A stretch of DNA of 64,000 nucleotides from Epithemia pelagica. Its lineage: Eukaryota > Protista > Bacillariophyta. The translations under genes were made by a program, and so were the position numbers. This document shows, piece by piece, positions 32,121 through 52,040 of the stretch (positions are counted from its first letter, which is position 1; every line of letters starts with the position of its first letter). Below the pieces are notes generated by a model. The model was not told where the DNA came from. It saw only the letters and a program-made list of their open reading frames with translations, and made no database searches. The DNA lies in NCBI GenBank assembly GCA_946965045.2, contig OX337235.1:496001-560000 (forward strand). Direction: 5' to 3'.

Positions 32121-35100
32121 CAAGCAACTGGTGGTAGTGCCTCAAAACGTGTGTGTCCATGCCCCTACTTGCGCAAGCCCCGCTGCATCATAACGTCCAC
32201 AAACGAATTCCATGGCCCGGTAAAATAATGAGCCCATGAACCCATTGCTTGTTCCAATCCTTCGCCTAGAAAGAGTGTCGGCAACTCCCAGAGGAGTTCC
32301 CAATTCTATGCAATTGTTGTTGTGTCGAGTCTTTGCCTTCCTGGGAAACGTGGTCCTCCAGTGACTGCTGCAGCAAAGACTTGCTGCCGTGAGCATCCTC
32401 TGACGTTGATGCACCCTCCTCCGTGGATTCGTCTTGTTGTTGTTGTTGTTGTTGTTGTGGCTTGTCTGATGGTTCCGGGCCAGGAATCTTGGGGATCGTT
32501 CGGGTCCGCTTGAATTGCTGGACGCGTCGCTGGTACAAGGACACGAGCAGCCATCCGGCGTGAAATTGAAGGCCCACGAGGATAAACACCAGGACGGACA
32601 CGACCCAAAAGCCCGGTGCATGGTCCCCCACGGACACTCCTCGTTGGCAACCGCATGCCACGAGCATTAACAGGACGACGGCCTCCATGGTTCGGGTGAC
32701 AAAGTAAACGACCACAAAACAGGGTAGCGCCACATACACAAAACGTCGATAGCTTGGACACGCCGTCAACTTGGTCCTGTTTTCCTTGTTACAGGAAGCG
32801 TCAAAGGCGGAATCATAGAATCGTACAATCCAGAATGGAGCAAACAGGGACCACTCATAGGTCCAAGCGACTAGAATCGTAAGACACATTTTCGAAATGG
32901 TCACTTCGGTGGCGGCAAAAATGATGAGTTGCAGCACAAAGAACCCCACATGATGAAAGGTAATTTGATAAAACATGCGGGGGTCAAAGTCACTGAATCG
33001 CCACTGCGACAGACGAAGGGCAATCTCGGCGATAAAATGGGCCCCCACCAGCCCGGATGTCCAAAAGGAAATCCGGTAGGATGAATCCGCAAACATCTGA
33101 ATCCAATAGGGATTGCCAATGATCTGGACCCAGAGAATCGTCATTGGTACAAAGCAGGCAGTCGAAATGACAAGACTCACCGTCAAGATGCACAATCTCA
33201 CACGTTCGCGAAAAATATCATTGTTGACTCGTTCCACTCGGAGTTCATCCTTGGCAACTAAAAGTATTTGGCTGTGGGCATCGACGGAGAGGTCTTCGTG
33301 GTCCACACCAGCCAATCGCTCACTCGCTGTCATTGCGACGGTACTAAAGTGCAGGGTAGCCGGTTGAACTTGTCCGGGTGATGTTTGAAACGGTCGGAAC
33401 TGGGACAAACTCCAAAAGGTTGCAATGTAGAGACCCACAATAATTGCAAAGCATGCCTGATAAGCCACAAACAAAAGAAAAGGGTAATGTGTCAGCAGCA
33501 GCAATCATGCCTTTTCCTTTGTGTCGTCCCACAATTCAAACCGTACCGTGTAAATTGCCACAGTGATGGGCATAAACCCGTTTTCATAGTAGTACCAGGA
33601 AGTGTAATCCACGCCCACATAACTGCAGACCGTGTCCATTCGGAACAAGCTTATCCCCACTTGGTCGGGCAGTCACTAGTCGTTTGGTTCGATGCACGTA
33701 CTGGCGTCCGTTTGAAAGGGACAGGGACGGTCCACATCGTCGTCGCTTTCAGGGGACAGGAGCGTTTGGAGCAAGGTTCGAAATTCAAACTGTTGCACTA
33801 AGGCTTTTCCGGCCTTGGTCAAGTAGTCGTCGCTCCAGAGCATGGGATTTTGAAGTATGGCATTGGACGCCACATCCTGAACGGCAAAGAGGCTGACCAA
33901 AATGAGCTGCACGTCGCCCAGCAAGGGAACAGTCGGGCGTGGGAATCGGCCAGAATGCCCGTCAAGAATTCGAGGCGATTCACATCTCCGTGGTAGAGTT
34001 GTTGGAGTTGTTGCGGATTGTCCACGGCCAGCTCGTCAAAGGATTGCAAGGGCGGTAATCCCACGTAGGAACGATAGGCATTGTAGGAGGGCAACCGTTG
34101 CGCGCGTTCATCGGCCAGTGCTTGTTCGGTAATCCCACGGACAAAGGGAGGGAAATTGTGGGGACCATACCGGGCAATGGGGGTCTTGGAAAAGGCCAAG
34201 GAAATTTGGGCAAGGCTGTAATTGGCAAATAGATTTGGAGACCACATGAGACTGGTCAGTGGTATTTGTTGGCCTTGAAGATGGAGTGCATCGGGAAGCA
34301 AGGAATGCCAGGCTTGGTAGACGTGATTGAATTCCAAAAAGTGGGGTTTGGCTCCCGAAAAGGGAAACTGCGGGACCATGAGTTGGCGAAGTTCCTCGGG
34401 ATTGTACGGGAGCCGCGCGTGATTGCGGGCATGGGAGACGGAATCGGAGACAAAGTCTTGAAGACGAATCTTTTGGACAATGTGAAAGGTAATGACGCGC
34501 GCTCGTTGAAAAATATCCTCATCGGTCCAGCCGCCCCCATCCTCCGCATCATATTGTCGTTGCGGTTGCGGTTGGTGTTGAATCAAAATGTCGCAGGCGG
34601 TATTGTGCAGGTAGAGGGCAATGCTGGTCCAAACAATGTGTCCGGGATGCATGTTGAACCGAGGATCCCCCATGGCAAAGTAGGCCGACGTGTCCACGTC
34701 TTGCTTACCGGCGGCACTGGAATTGCTACTGGGCCCATTGTGCGGTGTCCACATGTCAAAGTCGGGATAGTCTTGTTGCACATCGTTCCACAAGGGCGGA
34801 AAGTAGGTCCATTCTCCCGACGATGAGGATGTTTTCATTTTGCCATCTCCTTGCAAGGTACGGAGCGCGTCTTGTCGGTACCGGGTATGGCCATAGACAT
34901 GGGTCATGTGAAGTCCCCCATCACCTCCCCACGAATAGGATCCATTGGTATTGGGAACGGTTCGAAAGTTGTCATCGTGAAACCAATTGACAAAGGACAA
35001 GAACCAAAAATTCAACAAGGCCGGAGCACTATCCAATGGCATACAAGCCGACGACGAACGACGGGCAAAAACGGCATTGTACACATCACGGACCGGAGGA

Positions 35101-35884
35101 AGGTTGTCTGAATCCTTGTCCTCTGGTGATGGATTGGTGGCGTTGGGGCTACTACTGTTGGGACTCATACGACGCCACCATTTCATTGGGGAATCGGCGT
35201 GAGTGGGCGCCACACACTCCTCTGGTTGTCCGTCGTGGTCGTGGGCCGTGTCGGGGGGGGGCAACAAGAGATCCTGTGGCGTTCTTCTTGTCTGGGATGC
35301 GGCTGGACCGACAAATTGATCGGCCGCCGTGACACAGCCCGCCTTGTAAATGCGCGTCGACGGCAGCAAGGCCCCAATGCGTTTAAAAATACTCTTCAAA
35401 ATCACGGGAGAAATGGTGTGAATCTTGAACTGGTCGGGTCCCCCCAAGTCGCGGGCCGCCCGATGAATGGTTTCAAATTCCTTCCAGGTATTGCCGTGGA
35501 CTCGCGATTCCAAGGGGACGATTGTTCCGCCCCAGCTGGTCCATTCCCTGCAAGAATCAGAACGAGGCACCAAATCACGTGGCACGAACCGGATCGCCAA
35601 CGACAAGGGGGCAGTCGGACTCGGAAGGGCTTGGACATGTTGTCGTCGTCGCCTTGCCTTGTGTGTTTTCTGTATTGTTGGATCTCTATTCTGGAGAGGA
35701 TGCCGATTGGAGATTGGAGTAGGTATAATAGGTTGTCATCTATTAAAGTGACGTAAGGTAAATAGGAGTAATTCCCTGTGTTGTCAAGTCCTCTTGAGGA
35801 GGGTCGCGCGGCGCGTTTCTACTGTATGCGCCGGGCGATCTATCTAGAAACGCGCCGCGCGATCTATCCTTAGAAGCGACTTGG
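31960..35884. repeat. Inverted duplication arm B (partner 42476-46375)
   Basis: Reverse-complement similarity across the COX-TLC gene and flanks. Confidence 0.93.
32266..35638 (-). pseudogene. Cyclooxygenase (PGHS)-like heme peroxidase fused to TLC-like multipass domain, copy 1 (disrupted)
   Basis: COX motifs as in copy 2; intron 33457-33546 (GT...CTGAC...AG, phase 0). Lesions: frame break near 35500, 4-nt deletion near 33935, TAG-TGA in place of TGG-AGA near 33675. Confidence 0.88.
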
Positions 35885-36419
35885 GAAAACCACCACTATA
35901 TTGGAGGGGCGTCACTGCGTAATAGAAGTAGTGTGTGTTTGTGTATTGCGGAACTCACAATCAAGTGTGGCGGCTGGAACCACCAGAAGAGGATCGGTCG
36001 TCGCAACGTTGCAACTTGTATGGTTGGCCAATGGTGTAGATACTTTGGCTCTAGTAGAGGTAGTCTAGGATCCATCTACGATCGTCGGATTCCGAAAGCG
36101 CTTGATTACAAACCATACACGCCTATATACCTATACACGCCTACCGGTAGGTATATAGGTGCTACGATGTATGGATACAAAACGACAGACCTGTGCAGGT
36201 ATCCTGCAAACGACTGCACTATGCTCCGAGTAACAATCGTTTACAAAAGCCAAATGTGGCACGGCTCCAACGACACTGGCACACAACCAGGCACAGACAG
36301 AGTGGCGGATGAAACACACACGCACACATGGCCCCCTTCTTCCCGCCATGGATTCACACAGGGAAAGCGACTCGTACGCGGCATCCGAATGTTGGGTGTT
36401 GGAGAATCTCGAATATGAC

Positions 36420-36633
<214 letters not shown>

Positions 36634-36659
36634 CTTGGAGGACTTTCTATCTATCAAAG

Positions 36660-38000
36660 CTAGGGAGGTTGTTCCGTATCATGCACGGTGGTAGTAGGAT
36701 TGGCAGGAATGTCAAGACAAACACTCTCCCCACTATTACTCTTGTGCGATGATGCTTCCGTGAGATCCATGGTCCCTCCCCGCAGCATGAGCGTGGAGCG
36801 TGTGCCGGATGGTGCGGCGGTTCCTGCGGCGGCGGCTGGGATCCGACGATCGGTTGCCTCTTGCACCAGACTTACCAAAAAGGCCACGACAAAGGTGACA
36901 CCAAACAGGACGGCCATGCCACACAAGAGGTATACCACCAAGAGTTCGGTTACCGTTTGTTCGTTTTTGTTTTGTGGTTGTTCTGATTGTGGAGGAACCA
37001 TCGTGTCGTTATTGGGTGGTACGGACCACGTGACGGAGGAAATTGGTGAGGCGTCATGACAATGCACTTGATGGAGCGACACATTGGAGGAGGCTGCTGA
37101 GGAAGCTTGGGCGGCGGTCACGTCTCTCCAGTCCTGTTCGAGGGTCGTGGCCCAGTCTATTGTATCCGCCTCCTCTTGGACCACACTCATCCATTCCGAG
37201 GGATTGCACCAATCCCCATGGATACACGCTGGAATGGAACGGAATTGAAAGGTCACCTGTTTGGTGGTGACAACCACTGTGGATGCGTTGGTGTCTTCGT
37301 CGTTCGGGTTGGAGGGTGGAGTAGCAGTATTGGGGGCATTCCACGACAGGACCAAATCGCAGGGAATGGTAACATTGTAGGAAACGATCAACGTGGTGGC
37401 TCCCTCTTTCTCGTCGCCGCCCGCCACCCAACAGGCTTGTTGCACGTCCGACGCTCGAGGATTATTATTCGTATTCGTGCTGGGGATGATGCAGTTCCAT
37501 GCAGTCACGAGCCGGTCCTCCTCCTGGTCCAGGACATGGTCCATACAACGAAGCGATTGGTTCCAGAGCTGCCACCGATATTGCTTCTGGGCCTGGTTCC
37601 AGAGAGGGTCCGATGCCAATCGAGTGGTGGCAGTTTGATATTTGGGTGACAGGGTGGTGGTGGCAGTGGTTTTGCGGACTCGTCGGACCAGTCGAGCACG
37701 AAGATATGGACGGTTTCTCAAAGAGGACGAGGGATCTTCTACGAGCGACGACGCGGACGGTTTTTGGAGTGTTGGTTCCAGCATAGTCGTTTGGTGGACC
37801 CTGTGTGGTTGTTGGTGGTGCCGTTTGGGTGGTTGCGGCTGGACCGACACAAGGGATGCAGTCCTTGTTGGATACTTGTTCTTATTTGTTGGAGGAGTGA
37901 CAGGATGCCACAGGTCTGGTTCTGGTGGGACGGTTTCGGAGTGGACCATGGCAGATACAAGGCCAATCCAACCTAGAAATCGAGGGGCGTAGTAAGTCAT
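36660..38000 (-). CDS. Single-pass Cys-rich membrane protein (member 3; inverted duplicate of member 2)
   Basis: Near-identical translation to 30334-31668; ORF intact. Confidence 0.78.
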   Translation of the reverse strand: MTYYAPRFLGWIGLVSAMVHSETVPPEPDLWHPVTPPTNKNKYPTRTASLVSVQPQPPKRHHQQPHRVHQTTMLEPTLQKPSASSLVEDPSSSLRNRPYLRARLVRRVRKTTATTTLSPKYQTATTRLASDPLWNQAQKQYRWQLWNQSLRCMDHVLDQEEDRLVTAWNCIIPSTNTNNNPRASDVQQACWVAGGDEKEGATTLIVSYNVTIPCDLVLSWNAPNTATPPSNPNDEDTNASTVVVTTKQVTFQFRSIPACIHGDWCNPSEWMSVVQEEADTIDWATTLEQDWRDVTAAQASSAASSNVSLHQVHCHDASPISSVTWSVPPNNDTMVPPQSEQPQNKNEQTVTELLVVYLLCGMAVLFGVTFVVAFLVSLVQEATDRRIPAAAAGTAAPSGTRSTLMLRGGTMDLTEASSHKSNSGESVCLDIPANPTTTVHDTEQPP

Positions 38001-39875
38001 CCTTTTCTTCAGCTTGGACTTGATTGAGTGCATCCTGCAGGTTTATATCGTCATGGATCGAATTTGGGTAAAAAAAAAGATAATTGGGATGCTGCTGCTT
38101 TGACAACCTAGGTCTTGTTTTCCTCTCATCCTCTTCGTTGTGCGATACAACTGCTCGTAGTCCTTCGGATGGTGTGTCGCGGTTCGGATTTTCTCTGTTC
38201 CTCCGAGTGAAAAAAAGCTGCTGTAGACCGGCTTCGGGTTGAACGCTGTGTCACAGTCCGAAGGGGAGTTCCCAAAAATCACCCACAGGTCTCATGATGA
38301 TGATGATGATGTGACGACATGGCTCAAGAGAGAGAGAGATCACCCCCGTCGGAACCCATTGCCTCTCGGTTCACGTGCGCGCAAGTCGCTCATCCTCTCT
38401 AGAGGGGTGTGTGCCGATTCGAACGGCTCCATGCTCGCCATGGTGTTTGGATGCAAGAGAACCGTGTGCGAACACGTCTGTCTGACTCTGTCGCTTCTGT
38501 ATCGCGGTTTCCGAACCGTGCTACCCTCTCAAAGACCTATGCCACCAGCCGCCTTGGTCGGGTGGTACGGGCCTTTGCTCATGATGGTCTCGGTTCTTGG
38601 GTGTCCAGGGTTCGAGTCCGCTGTGATTAGGTGGTTGGGAGGGCTAGATGTGGGGCCCGAAAAGCGGTTCGTCTATGTGGCCCCTTGTCACAAGCGGGCT
38701 GTCCCCCCGCTCCATGATTCCGAGAAAAATGGCGCCAGGGCAGTCGGTCGACTGTACCCTAGTGTTGGATTCTGGTTCCTTCTTGGTAGTGTTGGATTGG
38801 AACAAGAAGGGCTGTGCGGGCAGTGGTTCGTGTTGGTGTGGTGCTCCTCGTTGTGTGTTTGGTGGAACGACATGTATCCGTGGTTCTTCTGGTTCTTGTG
38901 GTGGTGGTGGTGGGTCGTCCCGAGCACTCGTCGTGGTGGTGGTGGTTCTTATTGTGGTGGTTCTGAGCAAAGACGGCAAAATGGGCACCACAACTTTCAA
39001 AACCACATCCACGGATGGTGCCTCTCATCATATCAAAATGCCATTGAAAACTGCCAAGATTATGGGAACGATTCAAGAGGTGTATATTTTCTGTCATTTG
39101 TGCGTTGCCCAACTTTGGCCTCTTGTTTTTTTCCAAAGCGCCTGCCATGTCAAATCGTCAGCCTGCTTTCGATCGTTGAAATCTGAACGCCGGCCTCGCC
39201 TCGTATTTTGTACCATGAATCGTCTCACTTCTCACTTTTCGACAAACCACAAGAAATGACAATGGGGCTGCAACAAAATCGAACAATCCAGCAAAATGAA
39301 TGACCATAGCATGAATACTACTGTCAAGATCTACCCCCTGGATCATCAGTAAACGCGGCAATCAACCGAATGAGAAGAAGGATGAAAAATGACAAGATGA
39401 CAATCAACCAGTGTGTGGACGACATCAGAGTCTAAGGAAGGACACAATACAATGGATAGGGCCAGGAAGCCTAAACAAATAGGAGGAGTACCTAGATACA
39501 TATAGAGTTGACTATGCTTGTATTTTAGTTGCAGTCAATGTACTAAGAGCTTTCCTTGTTGTGGGCCATTGCCACTTGTCTTGTGTTTGTGCATGTTTTT
39601 TTCTGTTTCACGTGTGTGTTCACTGTTCATCCTTGTGTGGGATTTCTTCGCGTCGTGCTCCGTATCAAGCCAAAGCCAGGGCGAAGCGCGCGATGCCAGT
39701 TATGACAGTTGCTATGGACGTTATAATTACTGCTTTTAGAGAAAAAAACTGAGCTATAATTTAAAGTAAAAACTAAAATGAAAAAAGAAAAATGTCGGAT
39801 GGATGACAGAAGTTATACACCCGCCGGATCGGACAGATATAGGATTAATACTATCGCTTGCTTCTCGAGTAGATC

Positions 39876-40181
39876 ATGATTGACGACCACCTTCATGCTT
39901 CTACCAATCAAGGGTTGCCCCACAACCTCTTGAACATGTTCCACAACAACAACAACAACGAGATGATGAAGAATGGTCGAGGTGTTAAGGTTGAGACACT
40001 GGTGCCAGAACGAAACCGTGTCAACCTCCAGAACAAGAAAAAGAAGAACGTCATGACCCGATACGGTCCGATGGTTCTTGTGGTTGTGGTACTTTTTCAA
40101 TGGTCTATGTCCATGCCGTCCTCCTCCTTGTCGTCGTCGCTGTCTCTGGCCGTGTCGTCCATGTCCTCCGAATCTTGGACC

Positions 40182-40215
<34 letters not shown>

Positions 40216-42188
40216 CCACAACAAGAACAACACTCGTTTCGTCCCCCGAAACCAGCAGCCATAATAGGACGGACTCCACGTCTCCTTCTACTCGGAACGC
40301 CACTACCATTATAACCCAGTCACCACCACCACCACCACCAACAACAACAACAATTACTACTACGACAAGTAGGAATGGAACCGAGACAACGCCGTGGTCT
40401 CTGTGGAACCGTTGGATCTCCTTGCCATCGTCTGGGATGTCGTCAAATGTTTCGTTTGCCAGTGCTACCGACTGTCGACTGGCGATTCAAGACTCGGTTC
40501 AAAATCCGTGGATCATTGGCGATGGCATCCGCTATCGCATCCCCACGCTCGAAGATGTCATTGTCCTACCATTGATGGTCACGACCAACCACAACGACAA
40601 CAACCATTCATCCAACCACAAACAACAATATATTTTGCTCAATCCCTTGCTCCAGACCGACCCTTTGGTCCGTGCCTCGACGTGGTACTGTGGAAATCTC
40701 GAGCATGCGGCCCATTGGGCACACTTGGAAACCTTGATTCAAACGCATCAGTACTTCAATAGCAGCAGCAACAACAATAACAGCCTCAAGAAGGATTCTT
40801 CGTTGGAGAATGCGGGTCCCGTTCCGACACGAAACCTCTTTGTCCAAAGGCCCCGACAGCATGACCAAGTGATTGTGCCATGTCCTCTGGTGGTTCCCCC
40901 AACACCAATGAATACTACTAGTAGCAACCACCACCATTCGAACGACTCTGGCAGTCATGCGCCAATCGCCGTGACTCATTTGTGGTCCTCCGTGGCCGAA
41001 CGCCAAACCGGTGTATGGCCTGTGTACGATTTGCGGCTGTTTCAAACCTGCAATCGCTTGGAAACGCTGGAATTTTGGAACCAGACGAACCAGCAGCGGC
41101 ATCCCGAACGACGACGACAAGAGCATGCGGAGGATGCCACCACCCGTACAAATCACACAAGGCTCCGACCATACGAATCGCCGTTTTCCCCCGAACCAAA
41201 CCACCACAAGAACACGACAATAATGTCTCCCAGTAGTCCTCCTCCTCAAGTAGGTGCCTGTTTGATTACGTGGGGAGACAAGAGCCGTCAAGCCTTGCAT
41301 GAATGGATTGTATACCACCGATTATTGGGCGTTTCTCACTTTTGGATCCACATTAACGAAGACTGGAATACCACGTACAACAATCCGACCATGAATTTGA
41401 GCTATGTCACATATATTCCCTACAATTACCATTATCGTGACTACGTTCCAGATGCGGGAGGAGCCGTCTTTCCGTGGCAACAAACGATGCAAATGAGATG
41501 CTTGTGGAATGCCAAAAAATTCGGTTTCGATTGGGTCATCACCACCGATTCCGATGAATTTCTTGACATTTCCGATCCAGACATCATTCACAGAAATTCA
41601 ACAGCAGTAATAGATCCATTGTCCGTTTCGCTTGCAGATGCGACTGCTGTGACGGAGGATGCTCCACTCTTGCAATTCTTGCGCCGCTTTAATGCCGAAA
41701 AGATTGGGTCCTTGATTCTAGCAAGTGTCCCCTACGGTGACCACAAGACGAACAAGACCAATTTCCTGACAGTAGTCCCCCATGACAATACAACCAGTGA
41801 TTCTCCTCCCATAAAAACGAGCATCGTGTTGAAAATGGACCAAGTTTGGAGAAATCGCGACTTGAAGCACACGAAATACAAGCGTCAAAAAATGGTGTAC
41901 AGTGTTCCCACTGCCGCTTCGATTGGAATTCATTATTTACTGAAATGCAGTGCGGCCCATGATCCTGACAGGCAAGTCGGGTGTCAAATGACGCATGTGG
42001 AACAGACGTCCTTGTTCATTCGGCATTATCGAGAGGCCAGGACCCGAACCGGAATCCTCTATAATAACAACATTACGGCATTGGCGCCGGATCCCCGTCT
42101 TCCCGAACAGTATCGTCACACGGTCCTGGCGGTCATGACACAACACCAAATCAAACACAACAACAATAGTCAATCTGGTATTAGGTAG
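39876..42188 (+). CDS. Glycosyltransferase family 92 (DUF23)-like type II membrane protein
   Basis: TM PMVLVVVVLFQWSM, Thr/Ser/Pro stalk, then VGACLI...LHEWIVYHRLLGVSHFWIH...C...FDWVITTDSDEF (DxD)...KMVY...IHY...IRHY. Confidence 0.85.
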
Positions 42189-42475
42189 ATTTCTTTTTTT
42201 TTTTCTCTCTCTCTCTCTCTCTTCTACCTCGATCCTCCATACCGTTTCATCAACTTCATACAGTCGAAGGAAGCCCACAGTGGGATGCTTTCTCCTCCTC
42301 TATCCTCTATACCGTTTCATCCCAACCATTGCGGAGTAGTTATGTGCTATAAAGACGAACAGCGGAGGATTGACTGCTCAGATGATCGAGGACCTTTGCA
42401 CTCAACAAGACGCCAAACTTTTGTATAAGTTGGAACACTTCCTATCTAATCGCAAACCACTACGGAGTATATCTA

Positions 42476-45400
42476 AGTCGCTTCTAAGGATGGATCGCCC
42501 GGCGCATACGGTGGAACCGCGCCGGGCGACCCTTCTCAAGAGGCCTTGACACAGGGAATTACTCCTCTAAGAAATACCGTACGTCACTCTAGATGACAAC
42601 CTATTATACCTACTCGAATCTCCAATCGGCATCCTCTCCAATAGAGATCCAAAACTACAGTCTGTATAGCCATTCGCCAAAACACACACACAAGGCAACG
42701 CGACAACAACAACATGTCCAAGCCCTTCCGATTCCGACGACGGCCCCCTTGTCGTCGTTGGCTGTTCGGTTGGTGCCACTATGATTACGCCGTCATATTA
42801 CTGTGCCTCGTTTGGATTCTTGCAGGGAATGGACCAGCTGCTGGGGCGGAACAATCGTCCCCTTGGAATTTGAAGGACCATTTTTAACCATTCATCGGGC
42901 GGCCCGCGACTTGGGGGGACCGGATCAGTTCAAGATTCACACCATTCCTCCCGTAATTTTGAAAAGCATTTTGGAACGCATTGGAGCCTTGCTGCCATCG
43001 ACCCGAATCTACAAGGCGGGCTGTGTCACGGCCGCCGATCAATTCGTCGGTCCAGCCGCAGGATCCTCCTCCCAAACGCCGCAGGATCTCTTGTTGCCCC
43101 CCGACACGGCCCACGGACAACACGAGTGTGTGGCGCCCACTCACGCCGACTCTTCCATGAAATGGTGGCGTCGTAGTCACAACAGTAGCCCCAACGCCAA
43201 TCCACAAGAGGACAATGATCCAGACGACCTTCCTCCGGTACGGGATGTGTACAATGCCGTCTTTGCTCGTCGTCGGCTCGTATGCCATTGGAGAGTGCTC
43301 CGGCCTCGTTGAATTTTTGGTTCTTGTCCTTTGTCAATTGGTTTCACGATGACAACTTTCGGACCGTTCCCCATACCAATGGATCCTTTTCGTGGGGAGG
43401 CGATGGGGGACTTCACATGACCCATGTCTATGGCCATACCCGGTACCGACAAGAAGCGCTCCGTACCTTGCAAGGAGATGGCAAAATGAAAACATCATCG
43501 TCGTCGTCGTCGGCCACAACTGTGTTGGGAGAATGGTCCTACTTTCCGCCCTTGTGGAATGACGTGCAACAAGACTATCCCGACTTTGACATGTGGACAC
43601 CGCACAATGGACCCAGTAGCAATTCCAGTGCCGCCGGTAAGCAAGACGTGGACACGTCGGCCTACTTTGCCATGGGGGATCCTCGGTTCAACATGCATCC
43701 CGGTCACATTGTTTGGACCAGCATTGCCCTCTACCTGCACAATACCGTCTGCGACATTTTGATTCAACACCAACCGCAACCACGACAAGATGCGGAGGAT
43801 GGGGGCTGGACCGATGAGGATATTTTTCAACGAGCGCGCGTCATTACCTTTCACATTGTCCAAAAGATTCGTCTTCAAGACTTTGTCTCCGATTCCGTCT
43901 CCCATGCCCGAAATCACGCACGGCTCCCGTACAATCCAGATGAACTTCGCCAACTCATGGTCCCGCAGTTTCCCTTTTCGGGAGCCAAACCCCACTTTTT
44001 GGAATTCAATCACGTCTACCAAGCCTGGCATTCCTTGCTTCCGGATGCACTCCATCTTCAAGGCCAACCGGTACCACTGACCAATCTCATGTGGTCTCCC
44101 CATTTCTTTCAAAATACCAGCCTGGCCCAAATTGCCTTGGCCTTTTCTCAGACTCCCATTGCCCGGTATGGTCCCCACAATTTCCCTCCCTTTGTCCGGG
44201 GGATTACCGAACAGGCCCTGGCCGATGAACGCGCGCAACGATTGCCCTCCTACAATGCCTATCGTTCCTACGTGGGATTACCGCCCTTGCAATCCTTTGA
44301 CGAGCTGGCTGTGGACAATCCGCAACAACTCCAACAACTCTACCACGGAGATGTGAATCGCCTCGAATTCTTGACGGGCATTGTGGCGGATTCCCATGCC
44401 CGACTGCCCGGGAACTTGCTGGGCGACGTGCAGCTCATTTTGGTCAGCCTCTTTGCCGTTCAGGATGTGGCGTCCAATGCCATTCTTCAAAATCCCATGC
44501 TCTGGAACGACGACTACTTGACCAAGGCCGGAAAAGACTTTGTGGAACAGTTTGAATTTCGAACCTTGCTCCAAACGCTCCTGGCCCCCGAACACGGCGA
44601 CGACGTGGACCGTCCCTGTCCCTTTCAAACGGACGCCAGTACGTGCATGGAACCCAAGGACTGGAGACTCCCCGACCAAGTGGGGACCAGCTTGTTCCGA
44701 ATGGAGACGGTCTGCAGTAATGTGGGCGTGGATTACACTTCCTGGTACTACTATGATAACGGCTATATGCGCATCACTGTGGCAATCTACACGGTACGGT
44801 TTGAATGGTGGGACGACACCAAGGAAAGGACAGTAGGATTGCTGCTGCTGACACTTTTTTTCGTTTGTGTTGGGCGTTCCAGGCATGCTTTGCAATTATT
44901 GTTGGTCTCTACATTGCCGTCTTTTGGAGTTTGTCCCATTTCCAACCGTTTCAAAAATCACCCGGACCAGTGCAACCAGCTACCCTGCACTTTAGTACCG
45001 TCGCACTGACAGCGAGTGAGCCATTGGCTGTCGACCACGAAGATCTCTCGGTCGACGCCAACCGCCATGTACTACTCGTTGCCCAGGAGGAACTCCGAGT
45101 GGAACGAGTCAACAATGATATTTTTCGCGACCGTGTGAGATTGTGCATCTTGACCGTGAGTCTTCTCATTTCAATTGCCTGCTTTGTACCCATGACGCTT
45201 CTCTGGGTCCAGATCATTGGCAATCCCTATTGGATCCAAATGTTTGCGGATTCATCCTACCGGATTTCGTTTTGGACCTCCGGGCTGGTGGGGGCCCCTT
45301 TTATCGCTGAGATTGCCCTTCGTCTGTCCCAGTGGCGATTCAATAACTTTGACCCCCGCATGTTTTATCAAATTACCTTTCATCATGTGGGATTCTTTGT

Positions 45401-46375
45401 GCTGCAACTCATCTTTTTTGCCGCCGCCGAAGTGACAATTTCGAAAATGTCTCTTACGATTCTAGTCGCTTGGACCTATGAGTGGTCCCTGTTTGCTCCA
45501 TTCTGGATTGTACGATTGTATGATTCAGCTTTTGACGCTTCCTGGAACAAGGAAAACAGGAGCAAGTTGACGGCGTGTCCAAGCTATCGACGGTTTGTCC
45601 ATGTGGCGCTTCCCTGTTTCGTGGTCGTGTACTTTGTCACCCGAACCATGGAGGCCATCGTCCTGTTGATGCTCGTGGCATGCGGATGTCAACGAGGTGT
45701 GTCTGTGGGGGACCAGGCACCGGGGTTCTGGGTCGTGTCCGTGCTGGTGTTTCTCCTCGTGGGCCTTCAATTTCACGCCGGATGGCTGCTCGTGTCCTTG
45801 TACCAGCGACGCGTCCAGCAATTAAAGCAGACCACCCCGCAAATTCCTCGCGCGGAACCATCCGACAAGCCACAACAACAACAAGACGAAGAATCCACAG
45901 AGGAGGGTGCATCATCGTCGGAGGATGTTCCCGGCAGCAAGTCTTTGCAGCAGCAGTCACTGGAGGACCAAGTTTCCCAGGAAAGCATAGACTCTACACA
46001 ACAGCAAAAGCATAGAAATTGGAACTCCTCTTGAAGTTGCCAACACTCCTCCCATGAGAGGGATCGGAACAAGCAATGGGTTCATGGGCTCATTATTTTT
46101 ATACCGGGCCATGGAATTCTTTGGTGGACGTCAGGATGCAGCGGGGCTTGCATCCAAAGGAGGGACATGGACACGCACACGTTTTGAGGCATTACCACCA
46201 GTTGCCTATTGGAGGGGCGCCACTGTAAGGAGAGTGTGTGTTGGTTGCGGACATGACAATGAATTGGCGGCTTGATTGAATCACCATAGGATTGGCAATC
46301 CGTCGTCGCCACTCGGCCACTTTTATGGTTTACCCATGGTATAGATACTCTACTATCGAGGTAGTCTATGATCTA
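42476..46375. repeat. Inverted duplication arm B'
   Basis: AAGTCGCTTCTAAGGATGGATCG at 42476 matches the reverse complement of about 35862-35884; similarity continues to about 46375. Confidence 0.93.
42714..46034 (+). CDS. Cyclooxygenase (PGHS)-like heme peroxidase fused to TLC-like multipass domain, copy 2 (two frame breaks)
   Basis: Signal peptide; RIGALLPS..Y; FVNWFHDDNFRT; HVYGHTRYRQEALR...DGKMK; HNTVCDIL; WTDEDIFQRAR; EFNHVYQAWHSLLPD; SYNAYR...FDEL...LY.GDV. Intron 44794-44882 joins ITVAIYT|ACFAIIVG to a multipass domain with EIALR...FHHVG...YEW...VTR. Frame breaks at T5 (42883-42887) and near 43270. Confidence 0.85.
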
Positions 46376-46381
46376 GAAAAA

Positions 46382-46513
46382 GGTGGCTGGACCGATGAGG
46401 ATATTTTTCAACGAGCGCGCGTCATTACCTTTCGCATTGTCCAAAAGATTCGTCTCCAAGACTTTGTATCCGATTCCGTCTCTCATGCCCGGAATCACGC
46501 AAGGCTCCCGTAC
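46382..46513 (+). pseudogene. Third, isolated fragment of the COX-like exon
   Basis: GGWTDEDIFQRARVITFRIVQKIRLQDFVSDSVSHARNHARLPY, nearly identical to 43801-43932. Confidence 0.9.
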
Positions 46514-46565: not shown

Positions 46566-49142
46566 TTAGCTGTCATTTCCTGTCAAGTTGTCCTCGAAGC
46601 CCTCCTTTATCTCTTGCAAAAACTGTGACGATGGCATGTCCGGCTTTGTCTTGCTTCGCAGCAACCGCTTAGCGCTTTTTCCACGTCCTAATGCAACCTC
46701 TGAATGAGACGCCATAACCTCCGACTTTTCCCCTCCGCCACAAGTGGAACAAACAGCAAGCTTGGTCGCTTCAAAACAGTCATCGGTAGGCACTTCGATA
46801 GTTACTGTAAAAATTCTGCCATGGGAAAAATTCTTCTTGCGGATGGTGCTTTGCGATGGATCCTCGAGGCCAATCAGTAATAGAATACACAACCCAGTTT
46901 CGATGCCGGCATCTTTAAACACCATTTTCATGGCGTTGACTGCACCCTCGCGTTGCACAGAATTGTAAGATAATCGATTCTTCACACTCACTAGCATGGG
47001 ACAGTAGTGATCCTGATTATTGTGTTTGTATCGCACAGGTATTACCAGGTCGTAAGCTGGGCAAGAGGCATACGCATAGGATGCCCTTGCAGCTCGATAC
47101 CAGTGCTCCAATAGGCCATTCTCCTGCAGTTCTTTTAGACTGTAACGCAAGTAATTACGACACACTTGGATGAAATTGACGCTTGCTTGTCCAGTGCTAT
47201 CAACGCTAGATGAATCATCATTGTTGCCTTGCAGTTTTTTAAGCCATTTCTCGAGTGGAACGGAAAGATGTTTCAGATCTTTTGATTTTTCCCAGCGCAA
47301 CTCGTCTCCACAAGCCAGCATGTAAAAGGCAGCCGCGACTTCACCAACATCTCCCTTTTCAGGACGACACAATGCAGACGTATACATCTTGATGGCAAAT
47401 TTGGACCAAAAAGAAGGAGGTTGAAACCAGTCGCTAAAACGGTTGCAGTTCTTGATCATTTGGGACATCGCAAGCCATGCGCATACCGGATCCGGAAGGT
47501 ACGCAATATCTGCGACAGCTGGTTGTTCCGGGTCAAAATGAGTAAGGTAGGCATACCCCGAAGCCACTTGTTTCGACGCAAGATCAAATGAAACTTGGCC
47601 CATTTGCAGACGCGTTGCCAAAATTGAAAAACATGAACTCACATTCACCTGCTCAATCTTGTAGGCCCCACCTTTCATCCGAAGCAAGATTGAGTCCAAC
47701 GCTTTTTCTAGCTCACCCTTTAGATGCATCCGAGCGAACAACGGACGTCCATATTGGACTGCAACTTCAAACTCTGTCCAACATTTTTTATCGAATTCGG
47801 AACCACTGGTGATTGAAACAAGTCCAGTCGTCGTGATCTCGAAAAATGGAGCATACAACTTGTTGCCTGAGTTGTATGTTGCTTTTACATCTCTTGAGTG
47901 CTTGGAATGCTGCGGTGGCTCCGCAAAGTAGTTTGACAAACTCATGCTTGTCCCCGCAAACACGCCAACAATGTTATGTTCATTTTGTTTTCTTCGAAGC
48001 CACCATCGTATGCTTCGAAAATGAAATCCATCACCGTTGTTGATCAGGTGTTGGGACTCGTCAAAGAGCAGTATGACCTTTTCCTTTCCTCCATTCTTTA
48101 CAAAATCATCCAACTTCTTCCAGAGCGTTTCTCGGTCATCTTGGGTGGTTCCAATTGTTTTAACGTCCAGAGTCTGGGAGAAAATGTCACTGCCCCATGC
48201 TAAGTGTGTAACTTCGCCATGATGGCACAGAATGAGTTCACAGTGAACGTTGCTTTCATGGTCGTTATCAAACATTGTTTTGCATTCGTGAAGTAATTTG
48301 GTCTTGCCAGTTCCACTCGATTGGATGAGCGGAAAATACGGAGCCATGTATTCTTCTTTTGCGGAGTCTTTCCATTTGAAAAGTTCTTCCACTCGATCCA
48401 TGAATGCATTTAAGTCTCGTTTGTACAACATTGCGCTGTTTTTGATGTCAAAGTCGATGTAGGCCACTCTATGGGATTCATTGGGGGAAGAATCCATAGG
48501 AGTTACTTTTCCTGTTCTCAAAAAGTGTGCCAAGTTAATCTTCAAATAGTCTTGAACAACACTTGACAAGTTAGAAATTATTCTCAAGGATTTGATCGAT
48601 TGACTTCGAACAAAGTCTTTTTCTTCTTGTGACATATTTGTCTTGAACCAAGTGTCATCCAAGTAGTAACCAAGTGTTTTGCTGTCGTCCGGTGGATTCG
48701 GAGAGCTAGCGCTTCTTTTGCGCCTTTTGTTCTTTTTCGTAGGTTTCACAGTGTTTTGAGTCTTCCTCTTGGTTACTTTTTGTCTCTTTTCAGCTGGGCC
48801 GGTTTCGTCATTGCCCCCTCCACTCTTTCCCCCGTCGTTGTTGGTAGACGCCTCCCTCATATCTGGAGAACCTTCTTTTGCTGCTTTTGACGTATCAGCC
48901 TTGAACCAAGTGTCTTTCAAGTAGTAACCAAGTGTTTTGCTGTCGTCCGGTGGATTCGGAGAGCTAGCGCTTCTTTTGCGCCTTTTGTTCTTTTTCGTAG
49001 GTTTCACAGTGTTTTGAGTCTTCCTCTTGGTTACTTTTTGTCTCTTTTCAGCTGGGCCGGTTTCGTCATTGCCCCCTCCACTCTTTCCCCCGTCGTTGTT
49101 GGTAGACGCCTCCCTCATATCTGGAGAACCACTTCTCTTCAT
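46566..49142 (-). CDS. Crinkler-type P-loop NTPase with putative restriction-endonuclease-like C-terminus
   Basis: YMAPYFPLIQSSGTGKTKLL (Walker A), ILLFDES (Walker B), GRPLF, GDVGEVAAAFYML, AYDLVIPV...MLVSVKN; basic repeat-containing N-terminus. Confidence 0.72.
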   Translation of the reverse strand: MKRSGSPDMREASTNNDGGKSGGGNDETGPAEKRQKVTKRKTQNTVKPTKKNKRRKRSASSPNPPDDSKTLGYYLKDTWFKADTSKAAKEGSPDMREASTNNDGGKSGGGNDETGPAEKRQKVTKRKTQNTVKPTKKNKRRKRSASSPNPPDDSKTLGYYLDDTWFKTNMSQEEKDFVRSQSIKSLRIISNLSSVVQDYLKINLAHFLRTGKVTPMDSSPNESHRVAYIDFDIKNSAMLYKRDLNAFMDRVEELFKWKDSAKEEYMAPYFPLIQSSGTGKTKLLHECKTMFDNDHESNVHCELILCHHGEVTHLAWGSDIFSQTLDVKTIGTTQDDRETLWKKLDDFVKNGGKEKVILLFDESQHLINNGDGFHFRSIRWWLRRKQNEHNIVGVFAGTSMSLSNYFAEPPQHSKHSRDVKATYNSGNKLYAPFFEITTTGLVSITSGSEFDKKCWTEFEVAVQYGRPLFARMHLKGELEKALDSILLRMKGGAYKIEQVNVSSCFSILATRLQMGQVSFDLASKQVASGYAYLTHFDPEQPAVADIAYLPDPVCAWLAMSQMIKNCNRFSDWFQPPSFWSKFAIKMYTSALCRPEKGDVGEVAAAFYMLACGDELRWEKSKDLKHLSVPLEKWLKKLQGNNDDSSSVDSTGQASVNFIQVCRNYLRYSLKELQENGLLEHWYRAARASYAYASCPAYDLVIPVRYKHNNQDHYCPMLVSVKNRLSYNSVQREGAVNAMKMVFKDAGIETGLCILLLIGLEDPSQSTIRKKNFSHGRIFTVTIEVPTDDCFEATKLAVCSTCGGGEKSEVMASHSEVALGRGKSAKRLLRSKTKPDMPSSQFLQEIKEGFEDNLTGNDS
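48643..49130. repeat. Direct repeat, about 230 bp x2 with 258-bp (86-codon) period
   Basis: 48643-48872 matches 48901-49130; the protein repeats GSPDMREAST...YYLxDTWFK. Confidence 0.97.
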
Positions 49143-49212
49143 TGCGACAAGTTGATAACTTGTGGGTCAAGGGAGTCGTGGTAATATAGTGTGTTGCTGT
49201 TTGCTGCAGCAT

Positions 49213-49422
49213 GGAGGAAAACGGTTGTCTCCTAAACTCCTAAAATCCCACACTTTTTTGACGATCGAAGCCTGATCCAGGAAAAAGCAGTCGATCATCA
49301 TAAAAAAGAGTACTTACTATGCTAGACTACATGAATAATTTGTCGGAGCGTCATACGATTTGATGATTTCTGATCGGTAAAAAAATAGGATTTTGGGATT
49401 TTGGGATTAACCGTTTTCCTCC
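49213..49422. mobile_element. MITE-like element with terminal inverted repeats
   Basis: GGAGGAAAACGGTT (49213-49226) is the exact reverse complement of AACCGTTTTCCTCC (49409-49422); imperfect complementarity continues about 35 bp inward. No TSD seen. Confidence 0.6.
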
Positions 49423-49534
49423 TACTCCCTCTGGAAGTTGCACCAAAAAAAGGGGAATTGCGTCATTTCATGGGCGTATGTCCGTTGGTCAAAAAAATTA
49501 TATAGGCTTATAGCTCTTTTTAGTACGAACATTT

Positions 49535-52040
49535 CGGTATATAAAAAAAGACAAGAAACGAAAGCAAACTATCGCTGGAAATCAAAGACCTACTCAAACA
49601 ACTGAAAGAACATGATCTAGTCGTTATCCCCACGGATAAGACGAACTCCTTCACGATCATGTCGACTGGTGAATACTCAAAGGAAATCAACAAACACCTC
49701 ACGAAGAGCGCTGTCAGGATCGATCGCTCCAGACTCACAGAGATCGTGGACAACTGCTTCTCTTTCATTCAAGAACTGGACCCGTTCATTTCAACAAATG
49801 AGAGGAACTTCTTGAAAGAGAAAATTCAATCCAAGGCCATCCCATACCCGAAAATTCTGGTCAAGGATCACAAGAAGGCAGGACCCGACGGCAACTACCC
49901 AACACGTCTAGTCGTGCCCGCAACAAACTTTACAGCGGGCTTCCCCAAAATCGGCTACCTTGGCATCAAAAACTTGTTCAAGGAAAACAACATTGAGTAC
50001 GGATAACGTAACATTGTCCAAGCCTCAGACCTCAAGGAAAAACTCGAACAACTGCCCTTCGACTTCTCCAACTCAACAATCGTGTCGGTAGACGCTGAAG
50101 CCATGTACCCGTCGATTAAGTTCCAACTTATCTACGACGCGGTCATCTACTACGCGGAAGCGCTACCCCCCGAGACACACCGTACAATCAACCTCTGCCT
50201 CGATTTAATCTACTTCGGCATGACAAACACGTTGATTGCCTTCAAGGATGAGTATTACCTCTACGACGGTGATCTCAAACCCGAGGAGAGGGGTCTCACG
50301 ATTGGTGGATACGAGTCAGCTTGGTTGGCAGATCTAGTGATGTCCTTCCTACTAGAAGCAACCTACGATTCTATCCACGACCCCATGCACTATTTCGGCA
50401 TGTACCGAGATGACGGCCTAGCAGTATTCAAGGGCCAACTCTCAACGAAGCAAATCCAAGACTGGCTCAAAGCCTTTCAAACTGACATTAACGATGTAGC
50501 GGGAAATGAATTTCTCAAATTCACAGCCGTGATTTGGGATCCAACCAACCTCCACGATCCAGCAACAATCGAATCCCCCAGTACGACGATTGCCAAGTCC
50601 GAATCCTTCCCCTTCCTAGACATGGAGATGTTTTGGAACTCCAACTCCAAACTCTCCTTCAAGGTCCACCTGAAAGAAAACCAGCAGTTGAAAGTTGAAA
50701 TACCTTAACAAGGGGAGCGCTCACACCCCCGGGTGCTTCAAAGCAATCCCGAGCGGCGTTTTCAAGCGACTCACGAAACTTACCTCCCTTGACGACGACA
50801 ACACCAACTGCAAGCTTTCCGAACTCTATCCTACCCACTTCGAAGCCCTAAACAATGCCAAACTCATCAAACCCGAACAAATTCCTACTCTGGGCGAGTC
50901 TAAAGAAAAAATGGCAAAAGAAAAGGAAGACACGGCATCACAAGCGCTGAAGAAGAGACGAGAGCGAGACCATAAGAGGGCGATCTACTTCAAGATCGGA
51001 TTCACCGACTTTTGGAGAAAACCAATTCACAAAGTGATAAAGGAGATCAAGTCCAAATTCCCCTCACTTTCGTGGCTACGCATATCTATGTCCTACCATC
51101 GCTTCAATAACATCCGCGAACTTTTTCAAGGGGACTTGAACTCAAAGCTAGCAGACGGCCTCAACTCACTGGACTTCGAAGACCTCGACTGCAACTGCAG
51201 GAACAGAGAGGCATGCCCGTACGGTGGCCGCTGCAGGAGATCGATAGTTGTCTACAGAGCTACCTGCCTCCAAAAAGGTAAACAGTACATTGGAAACACG
51301 CAACAACATGTAAAGAAACTTCTGCAGCAACACGTACAAGACGTCAAAGCTCTTGTACTCCAAAACAAACAATCAGACTCTTTCGCGAGTCACTTTGCGT
51401 GTTTTGTCCCACGAGGCATCGAGAAAAAAGAGATCAAACAACACGTCAAACTCAAAGTTGATATCCTATGGCAGGGCAAACCACTGTCCACAGTCAAGAC
51501 GTTTGGTACACGAAACTGTAAACTCTGCGCGAAAGAGAGGCTAGAGATACTGAAATTCACACGAAAGAACCCGAAATTGGCAATCAACAAGTGCAACGAG
51601 GTTTACGGCGCCTGTCGCCATAAGCCGAGATTTCATCGGTTCAAGAACAACAAAACAACCAGCACTGATGAGTCGGACGACGACGAAAGGGTCCTCCTTT
51701 GCCGCCCGATTTCGACTACCTCGGCAAGCTCAAGGTCCTCGATTTTCTCATGGACAACCTCCTCATCAATCTCCCCCACCGACCTATCAACTGCAAATGA
51801 CGATATGGACCAGGGCACAGACATGAGGAGTGAAAGCATCATTGATGCGATCCCGCCCATGTCTTACCAAGAACGACGTAGACGGGGGCTCCAAGCTAGA
51901 TTTGCATTCAGCACTCCCAAAGACACTCCACCAGTGCTCATTGTGGACGACGGCAAACTAGAGGAGCTCCCTATCGTTGATGCCCTGACCACCGATGTAG
52001 TTGATAACGGCGACCGGGTACGAGTGGATGTAGATTAGTC
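49535..52040 (+). mobile_element. 5'-truncated Penelope-like retroelement (RT plus GIY-YIG endonuclease), disrupted
   Basis: LVVIPTDKTN, SVDAEAMYPSI, GLTIGGYESAWLADLVM, YRDD, FPFLD, SIVVYRATC...YIGNTQQ...QH. In-frame TAA at 50004-50006 and a frameshift from a GTTGAAA duplication near 50695. Confidence 0.92.
51660..51704 (+). ncRNA. Type I hammerhead ribozyme in the PLE 3' region
   Basis: cagca-CTGATGA-GTCG-gacga-CGAC-GAAA-GG-gtcct-CC-TT-tgccg: intact catalytic core, 4-bp stem II, short stem III, stem I GCA/TGC. Confidence 0.78.

Follow-up and report, generated by a model that had tools for sequence, protein, structure and literature searches.

The 64,000-nucleotide stretch of the genome of the diatom Epithemia pelagica analysed here (contig OX337235.1, positions 496,001 to 560,000 of the forward strand; hereafter the window, in whose coordinates positions are given) carries two inverted paralogues, placed head-to-head, of a gene in which a cyclooxygenase (COX)-like haem dioxygenase is joined to a multipass membrane domain. 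Copy 1 lies on the + strand at 42714-46034 and copy 2 on the - strand at 35638-32266. An initial annotation had taken 42714-46034 for one gene encoding a single fused polypeptide. The fusion is borne out by relatives in other algae; the reading of copy 1 as a continuous coding unit is not, its frame being broken, and this genome has four versions of the gene, all of them disabled. The features of copy 1 are as follows.

42714..42887, + strand: start codon and signal-peptide-like segment, from three-frame translation; the frame closes at the TAA at 42885-42887.
42888..43266, + strand: N-terminal region of the mature protein (…TIHRAARDLGG … RDVYNAVFA), in a frame other than that of the ATG and colinear with the homologues P0002, P0004 and P0009.
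43264..43268, + strand: site of a 7-nt frameshifting deletion, polymorphic, with +GCCCGCC in a contig of run X2.
43282..44793, + strand: open reading frame (ORF) for the COX-like haem dioxygenase catalytic domain, matching Pfam PF03098 and prostaglandin G/H synthases (PGHS) 2 and 1.
43330-43359, + strand: distal-side motif FVNWFHDDNF, inside the COX-like ORF.
44008-44046, + strand: Tyr/His motif NHVYQAWHSLLPD, inside the COX-like ORF.
44794..44882, + strand: 89-nt GT..AG phase-0 intron, seen in the sequence and as a joint in a contig of run X3, at the same position in L001 and L002.
44883..44933, + strand: transmembrane (TM) helix 1, spanning the splice junction (…ITVAIYT/ACFAIIVGLYIAVFWSL), from hydropathy and an AF2 helix at residues 2-19.
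45105..45842, + strand: six-TM barrel core, TM2-TM7, with a predicted TLC/ceramide-synthase-like fold, from AF2 models, fold searches and the family alignment.
45381-45386, + strand: codons of the HH pair, in the barrel core.
45474-45488, + strand: conserved E in YEW, in the barrel core.
45630-45656, + strand: conserved R in YFVTR, in the barrel core.
45765-45782, + strand: conserved Q in LQFHAG, in the barrel core.
45843..46034, + strand: acidic, Q-rich and weakly conserved C-terminal tail (pLDDT <50) and TGA stop.

The identity of the N-terminal enzyme is the simplest part of the analysis. As the initial annotation had expected, the ORF at 43282-44793 matches the Pfam family An_peroxidase (PF03098), with a score of 96.7 bits (E 1.7e-27) against a gathering cut-off of 25 bits, and the homologues P0002, P0004, P0007 and P0009 likewise score above that cut-off. 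The closest relatives in the PDB are PGHS-2 and PGHS-1 (E~1e-29), with the alpha-dioxygenases (1e-7) and lactoperoxidase far behind. A HMMER alignment with human COX-2 places NHVYQAWHSLLPD opposite NTLYH-WHPLLPD, so that equivalents of the catalytic Tyr and the proximal haem His are retained; these we take to be Tyr385 and His388 in ovine COX-1 numbering. On the distal side the alignment sets N-W-F-H-D against Q-H-F-T-H, with the His one position early, a placement that comes from the alignment only. The surrounding motif FVNWFHDD is identical among the full-length family members that were read, including the one from the haptophyte Prymnesium. One member of this COX-like subfamily has already appeared in print, namely the Nitzschia sp. 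sequence MMETSP0014_6887 with its FVNWFHDDNF, which Di Dato et al. (2020) found to cluster at the base of the animal COX clade (PMC7096440). That sequence was analysed solely as a trimmed catalytic domain, with no mention of a membrane domain (PMC7096440).

The strongest evidence for the fusion comes from other organisms. When the 383-residue C-terminal piece was used as a phmmer query against 1.84 billion cluster representatives, it returned 17 matches, equal to 17 clusters at 50% identity, and each of the five matches of at least 600 residues carries An_peroxidase N-terminal to the membrane domain. Among them is a 1054-residue protein of Seminavis robusta (P0002, CAB9499617.1), which is named "Prostaglandin G/H synthase 2" and has the fused layout; since its mRNA span of 3165 nt (46829-49993) fits 1054 residues, the gene is one intronless exon. 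Further fused homologues are P0004 (934 residues), P0009 (1010), P0007 (766) and P0003, the last with a longer cluster mate, P0019 (756). The same layout is found in an 881-residue protein of the haptophyte Prymnesium parvum (P0028), which a core hidden Markov model built without it matches at E 6e-17. Within the family, identity is 19-42% in the barrel core and 36-57% in the COX part. Two apparent stand-alone C-terminal domains (P0005 and P0006) proved to be gene-caller fragments lying directly behind An_peroxidase ORFs and split from them by the intron, and no stand-alone family member was found among those with readable context. In all readable contexts, then, the C-terminal domain is tied to this COX subfamily. 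A profile search of a 5.8-billion-sequence database with the family alignment, restricted by shared words, returned the window's own products alone. As read from these homologues, the fusion of a COX-like enzyme to a multipass membrane domain is genuine and conserved in diatoms and a haptophyte.

The junction itself is just as the initial annotation had described it: the COX-like ORF ends in ...ITVAIYT at 44793, a phase-0 GT..AG intron follows (89 nt here, 90 nt in copy 2, with CTGAC upstream of the acceptor AG in copy 1), and the next exon opens with ACFAIIVG and includes EIALR, FHHVG, YEW, VTR and QFHAGW. Both diverged copies keep this junction, and an intron interrupts the same codon position in two other taxa, where it is 49 nt (L001) and about 86 nt (L002) long. 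Judged by these shared positions and by the continuous fused ORFs, the junction intron is old and has been lost in some lineages. The joint predicted across 44793/44883 is present in one assembled contig of the public run X3, in which 44792 is joined to 44882 at GT..AG; a second X3 contig begins exactly at 44882. The support for splicing at this locus is thin, since the flank in the joined contig is just 28 nt and the library type of the run is not on record, and this weakness counts against the overall explanation given below. Spliced RNA from at least one of the four copies is suggested by that single contig. Another X3 contig enters copy 1 at 42670, just past an AG, out of 255 unrelated letters; this junction could reflect a rearranged allele, or else an intron in the 5' untranslated region or an alternative leader of copy 1. 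Shortly after copy 1 ends, at 46370..46513 on the + strand, stands an orphan 144-nt piece of the COX exon (…WTDEDIFQRARVITF…SHARNHARLPY; tblastn identity 94% over 48 residues), and the same fragment recurs downstream of the genes on a second contig, ctg1180l, of the same ENA assembly (ERZ21939226).

This second contig, which shares 97-98% identity with the window and is colinear with it downstream, carries two further gene copies (copies 3 and 4), and the spacer of about 7 kb between its genes is inverted relative to window 32266-46034 (compared with L006 and L008). Because of this inversion its genes are reciprocal hybrids: copy 3 resembles copy 2 in its 5' part and is identical to copy 1 in its 3' part, and the reverse holds for copy 4. 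We infer that ctg1180l is the other haplotype, and the spacer inversion looks like a polymorphism that arose by recombination between the inverted repeats. The window haplotype lacks an insertion of about 4 kb (L006 204-4173, at about window 39321; also in L009 and L010), which codes for ORFs of 312 and 387 residues without a Pfam match; since the 312-residue product is identically encoded on three contigs, the insertion is probably a mobile element.

All four copies are broken, with a total of nine independent lesions. Copy 1 has a 25-nt deletion at about 42874 relative to copies 3 and 4, which is why the signal-peptide frame closes at TAA, and a 7-nt deletion at about 43266 that shifts the frame a second time. 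The features of copy 2 are these.

32266..35638, - strand: inverted paralogue, with ATG at 35638 and a stop ending at 32266.
35509-35490, - strand: lesion of -7 nt, past the signal peptide, at about 35500.
33937-33918, - strand: lesion of -4 nt, at about 33927.
33678-33673, - strand: in-frame TAG TGA, read from the sequence.
33546-33457, - strand: 90-nt intron, with the same junction kept.

In copy 3 (L004) the signal-peptide junction is intact, but the frame is broken at a poly-C tract (window 43096-43101 and its equivalents) that holds 6, 7 or 9 C according to the copy, the 7-C version being the one that breaks copy 3; copy 3 also carries a nonsense change, CGA>TGA, equivalent to window 43783 C>T. 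Copy 4 (L008, from 15836) is open for 384 codons from its ATG and is disabled by two lesions, GAG>TAG at L008 16988 and, in TM1, a frameshift of +2 nt (TA). No intact copy was found in the window or along ctg1180l. Two of the nine lesions, the TGA in copy 3 and the 4-nt deletion in copy 2, also appear in X3 contigs. The TA frameshift also disposes of the idea that the C-terminal exon is intact in all copies and hence separately selected.

Comparison of copy 1 with copy 2 gave ratios of nonsynonymous to synonymous divergence (dN/dS) of 0.32 in the COX exon, 0.21 in the TM core and 0.84 in the tail, at dS 0.11-0.18. By these values the bias of copy differences toward synonymous positions, which the initial annotation had noticed in the COX exon, is real. 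The combination of dN/dS values of 0.2-0.3 with the lesions argues for past constraint followed by recent loss of function, and long purifying selection with a recent loss in this lineage or strain would be the simplest reading.

A different reading of copy 1 is that it is functional and encodes one polypeptide across 42714-46034, the frame breaks being assembly errors or bridged by unseen introns. The open state of both the COX exon and the C-terminal exon, the dN/dS below 1, the spliced contig and the +7 allele at 43264 in run X2 all fit that reading, but we consider it highly improbable, because contigs of runs X1 and X2 match the region of the 25-nt deletion with no mismatch. Assembly errors, moreover, do not typically take the form of 25-, 7- and 4-nt indels and point nonsense codons. 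A small intron linking the signal-peptide frame to the mature frame was tried and rejected: the sole GT..AG candidate is 42 nt and retains the wrong frame, copies 3 and 4 read through the region of the deletion, colinear with Seminavis, and they and the homologues cross both sites of frame breakage in copy 1 without an intron. Read in this way, the lesions make the locus one of four copies disabled by mutation and not a working gene.

The exon at 44883-46034 codes for seven predicted TM helices, and the AF2 model of the whole C-terminal piece (pLDDT 78, pTM 0.72) has TM1, a linker of about 65 residues and then six TM helices, the six-TM core alone being modelled with pLDDT 84 and pTM 0.82. The initial annotation had called this domain TLC-like, and at the level of fold the description stands. 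In a Foldseek-independent scan of 48,161 PDB chains the leading matches were the ceramide synthases CerS6 (Z 15.3), Lac1 (14.4) and yeast CerS (14.1), followed by TMEM120A (12.9) and ELOVL7 (9.9), with generic helical bundles at 10 or less; re-alignment of Foldseek candidates with VIA-align gave Z 16.2 for CerS6 and 14.5 for Lac1 over 220-254 residues. The top 30 Foldseek matches in AFDB Swiss-Prot are mostly TLC proteins (CerS2-6, TLCD2/4, fld-1, TRAM, TDA4 and YPR114W), the best being TLCD2 at TM-score 0.60/0.60, and TMEM120B and HACD are also among the AFDB matches. An ESM feature search indicated PF03798, the Pfam TLC family. The distribution of loop charges (positive-inside) predicts seven TM helices with the N-terminus lumenal and the C-terminus cytosolic; this is the topology of CerS, and a lumenal COX domain led by a signal peptide fits it.

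The family alignment adds a set of residues that resembles an active site. An HH pair is present in every member covering that site and lies in the predicted TM4 (residues 167-168, helix 158-180), and the Glu of W-E-W in TM5, the Arg of Y-F-A-T-R in TM6 and the Gln of L-Q-x-H-A-G in TM7 are nearly invariant. In an S-x-D-V motif the conserved D is replaced by E in this genome and is missing from Prymnesium. CerS6, for its part, uses His211/His212 in TM4, Asp242 in TM5b, Arg275 and Asn315 in TM7, with an acyl-enzyme intermediate formed on His211 (PMC11919693); His138/His139 of CLN8 are catalytic as well, and His117 of TLCD1 is used likewise (PMC13661276).

Several results weigh against this assignment and must be set beside it. 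The sequence level lends it nothing: the window protein has no match to PF03798 at E up to 1, none of 19 family members matches that family at E up to 10, nor do they consistently match any other Pfam family, and searches of PDB sequences with a single sequence and with the family profile gave chance matches alone and no CerS chain. The Foldseek E-values are weak (2e-3 to 0.4), a shape search of the ESM Atlas found unrelated membrane proteins only (TM-score <0.5), and TMEM120A (Z 13.8) ties with Lac1 (13.7) and CerS6 (13.6) when the six-TM core is used alone. The HH pair falls about 8 residues or fewer from CerS6 His211, a distance obtained by linear interpolation of the aligned ranges only. 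We read the barrel as a divergent representative of the HH-motif six-TM acyl-CoA enzymes, nearest to TLC in fold but with no match to the Pfam TLC family in sequence.

The tie with TMEM120A bears on the possibility that, among these enzymes, the barrel should be grouped with ELOVL/TMEM120 instead of with TLC and could be a condensing enzyme or a CoA-binding module. The Z scores of TMEM120A (12-13.8) and ELOVL7, and the TMEM120B and HACD models among the AFDB matches, speak for such an origin, which we nevertheless regard as unlikely: CerS6 is ahead once TM1 is included (Z 16.2 and 15.3, against at most 13.2), TLC proteins predominate in the Swiss-Prot list, and the HxxHH box of ELOVL is missing, the sequence here being Q-I-T-F-H-H without a His at -3. 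In addition, CerS shows a matching layout of seven TM helices, with the N-terminus out, the C-terminus in and a cytosolic insert between TM1 and TM2 (PMC11919693).

A purely structural role for the barrel is a serious rival. The barrel would then be a non-catalytic anchor, oligomerisation module or lipid sensor that makes a monotopic COX integral to the membrane without acyl transfer, in the manner of TRAM-type TLC proteins or of TMEM120A, whose enzymology is unproven. The lack of a TLC match at the sequence level, the equality of TMEM120A and CerS on the six-TM core, the variability of the S-x-D-V Asp and the faster evolution of the C-terminal domain relative to the COX domain are all consistent with a structural role. 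We judge it somewhat improbable even so, because the HH pair, Glu, Arg and Gln are charged or polar residues within TM helices, and the near-invariance of the last three from diatoms to a haptophyte, with HH wherever that site is covered, is the pattern of an active site; a single TM helix, furthermore, would suffice for anchoring.

Taken together, the copies in this genome are disabled copies of a fusion gene whose intact relatives probably encode a bifunctional protein of the endoplasmic reticulum (ER), a dioxygenase and acyl-transfer enzyme whose mechanism can be outlined by inference. What the analysis shows is the domain architecture and its conservation, the resemblance in fold and the lesions in this genome; the two activities are proposed. 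In the relatives the gene encodes one ER-membrane protein of roughly 900-1050 residues, consisting in order of a signal peptide, an N-terminal region of about 190 residues, a predicted lumenal COX-like dioxygenase, TM1, a cytosolic linker of about 65 residues, a six-TM HH barrel with a TLC-like fold and an acidic cytosolic tail. Such a protein would have two active sites. Since the HH pair and other cavity residues are kept, acyl-CoA binding and an acyl-His intermediate are expected of the barrel, which by analogy with CerS6, TLCD1 and CLN8 would take an acyl chain from cytosolic acyl-CoA onto its first His. Since the catalytic Tyr and proximal His are kept, the COX domain is expected to abstract a hydrogen from a polyunsaturated fatty acid (PUFA) chain of the same lipid pool and to add O2.

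The order of the two steps can be argued from topology. We favour a barrel that would act upstream, either by delivering or tethering a PUFA chain toward the lumenal leaflet or by making a PUFA ester or amide for the COX domain to oxygenate. Mammalian COX-2 oxygenates 2-arachidonoylglycerol and anandamide. Re-esterification of a lumenal COX product seems less plausible, since the cavity of TLC proteins faces the cytosol and requires a CoA-activated donor. The same topology counts against the bifunctional reading, in that the two active sites are predicted to lie on opposite faces of the membrane: with the COX domain lumenal and the TLC cavities facing the cytosol, direct channelling is not obvious and would be topologically awkward. 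Also to be counted against it is that no biochemical study of any family member was found in the literature. More tentatively, we put forward as a possibility short of probable that the family is an unrecognised bifunctional ER enzyme of diatoms and haptophytes, in which a CerS-like barrel and a COX domain work on the same PUFA chain to give lipid-bound prostanoid-like oxylipins (esters or amides), or in which the barrel delivers PUFA derived from acyl-CoA across the bilayer to the lumenal COX.

The spacer between copies 1 and 2 holds a 770-residue ORF (39876-42188, + strand) with a weak match to Glyco_transf_92 and long low-complexity stretches rich in T, S and N. Beyond copy 1, at 46566-49142 on the - strand, an 858-residue ORF has a weak match to AAA_22 and opens with a tandem duplication of about 257 nt (48616-48872 and 48874-49130, 96.5% identical) that repeats an N-terminal segment rich in K and S.

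The interest of this family for algal oxylipin biochemistry is real. Prostaglandin-like signalling is documented in phytoplankton and its enzymology is thin; the diatom "COX" proteins of Skeletonema and Thalassiosira that have been linked to prostaglandins belong to other branches (peroxidase- or alpha-DOX-like). A COX-like enzyme tethered to a TLC-fold barrel hints at lipid-conjugated oxylipins or, alternatively, at a new route by which a lumenal dioxygenase is fed from the cytosolic acyl-CoA pool. The initial annotation held that this architecture had not been described, and the literature searches turned up no paper on a COX/TLC or COX/multi-TM fusion in algae, although databases already include fused proteins under the PGHS-2 name. 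The domain architecture would be new for both the COX and the TLC-fold families. The genome also records a recent loss, all four copies having been broken independently despite earlier purifying selection.

Comparison with known systems helps to place both halves of the protein. The animal PGHS enzymes COX-1 and COX-2 (family 4 of the peroxidase-cyclooxygenase superfamily) resemble the N-terminal half in being its best PDB matches, with about 400 residues aligned, in the Tyr/proximal-His motif (VYQAWH here, LYH-WH there) and in the signal peptide at the N-terminus. They differ in that identity is just 25-30% or so, the distal Gln and His are replaced in register here, an Ala stands at the position of Ser530, and a seven-TM C-terminal extension is joined to what is in COX a monotopic enzyme. 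The TLC acyltransferases (CerS6, Lac1/Lag1, TLCD1/2/4 and CLN8) share with the C-terminal half the seven TM helices with TM1 outside a TM2-TM7 barrel, an HH pair (here in the predicted TM4), additional conserved acidic, Arg and Gln/His residues in TM5-TM7, and the leading fold matches (Z 14-16, and TM-score 0.6 to TLCD2); CerS also has the cytosolic insert between TM1 and TM2, the lumenal N-terminus and the cytosolic C-terminus (PMC11919693). Unlike the TLC proteins, the barrel has no detectable sequence homology to PF03798, none of the Lag1p motif aspartates is verified in register, and the family is very small (17 clusters) and always fused to COX where the context is readable. In TMEM120A (TACAN) and ELOVL7, too, six TM helices form a barrel that carries an HH pair (Z 12-14 and 9.9), but the HxxHH signature is missing here, and the placement of TM1 and the overall layout fit CerS better.

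The closest parallels to the arrangement as a whole are the fungal DOX-CYP fusions (Ppo/linoleate diol synthase) and the coral AOS-LOX, in which an enzyme that oxygenates lipids and a second lipid enzyme of the same pathway form one polypeptide, the oxygenase of DOX-CYP being itself a COX-like haem dioxygenase. In contrast to these systems, the partner in the algal proteins would be an integral-membrane barrel with an acyltransferase-like fold rather than a soluble P450 or catalase-like domain, and the two domains are predicted to lie on opposite sides of the membrane.

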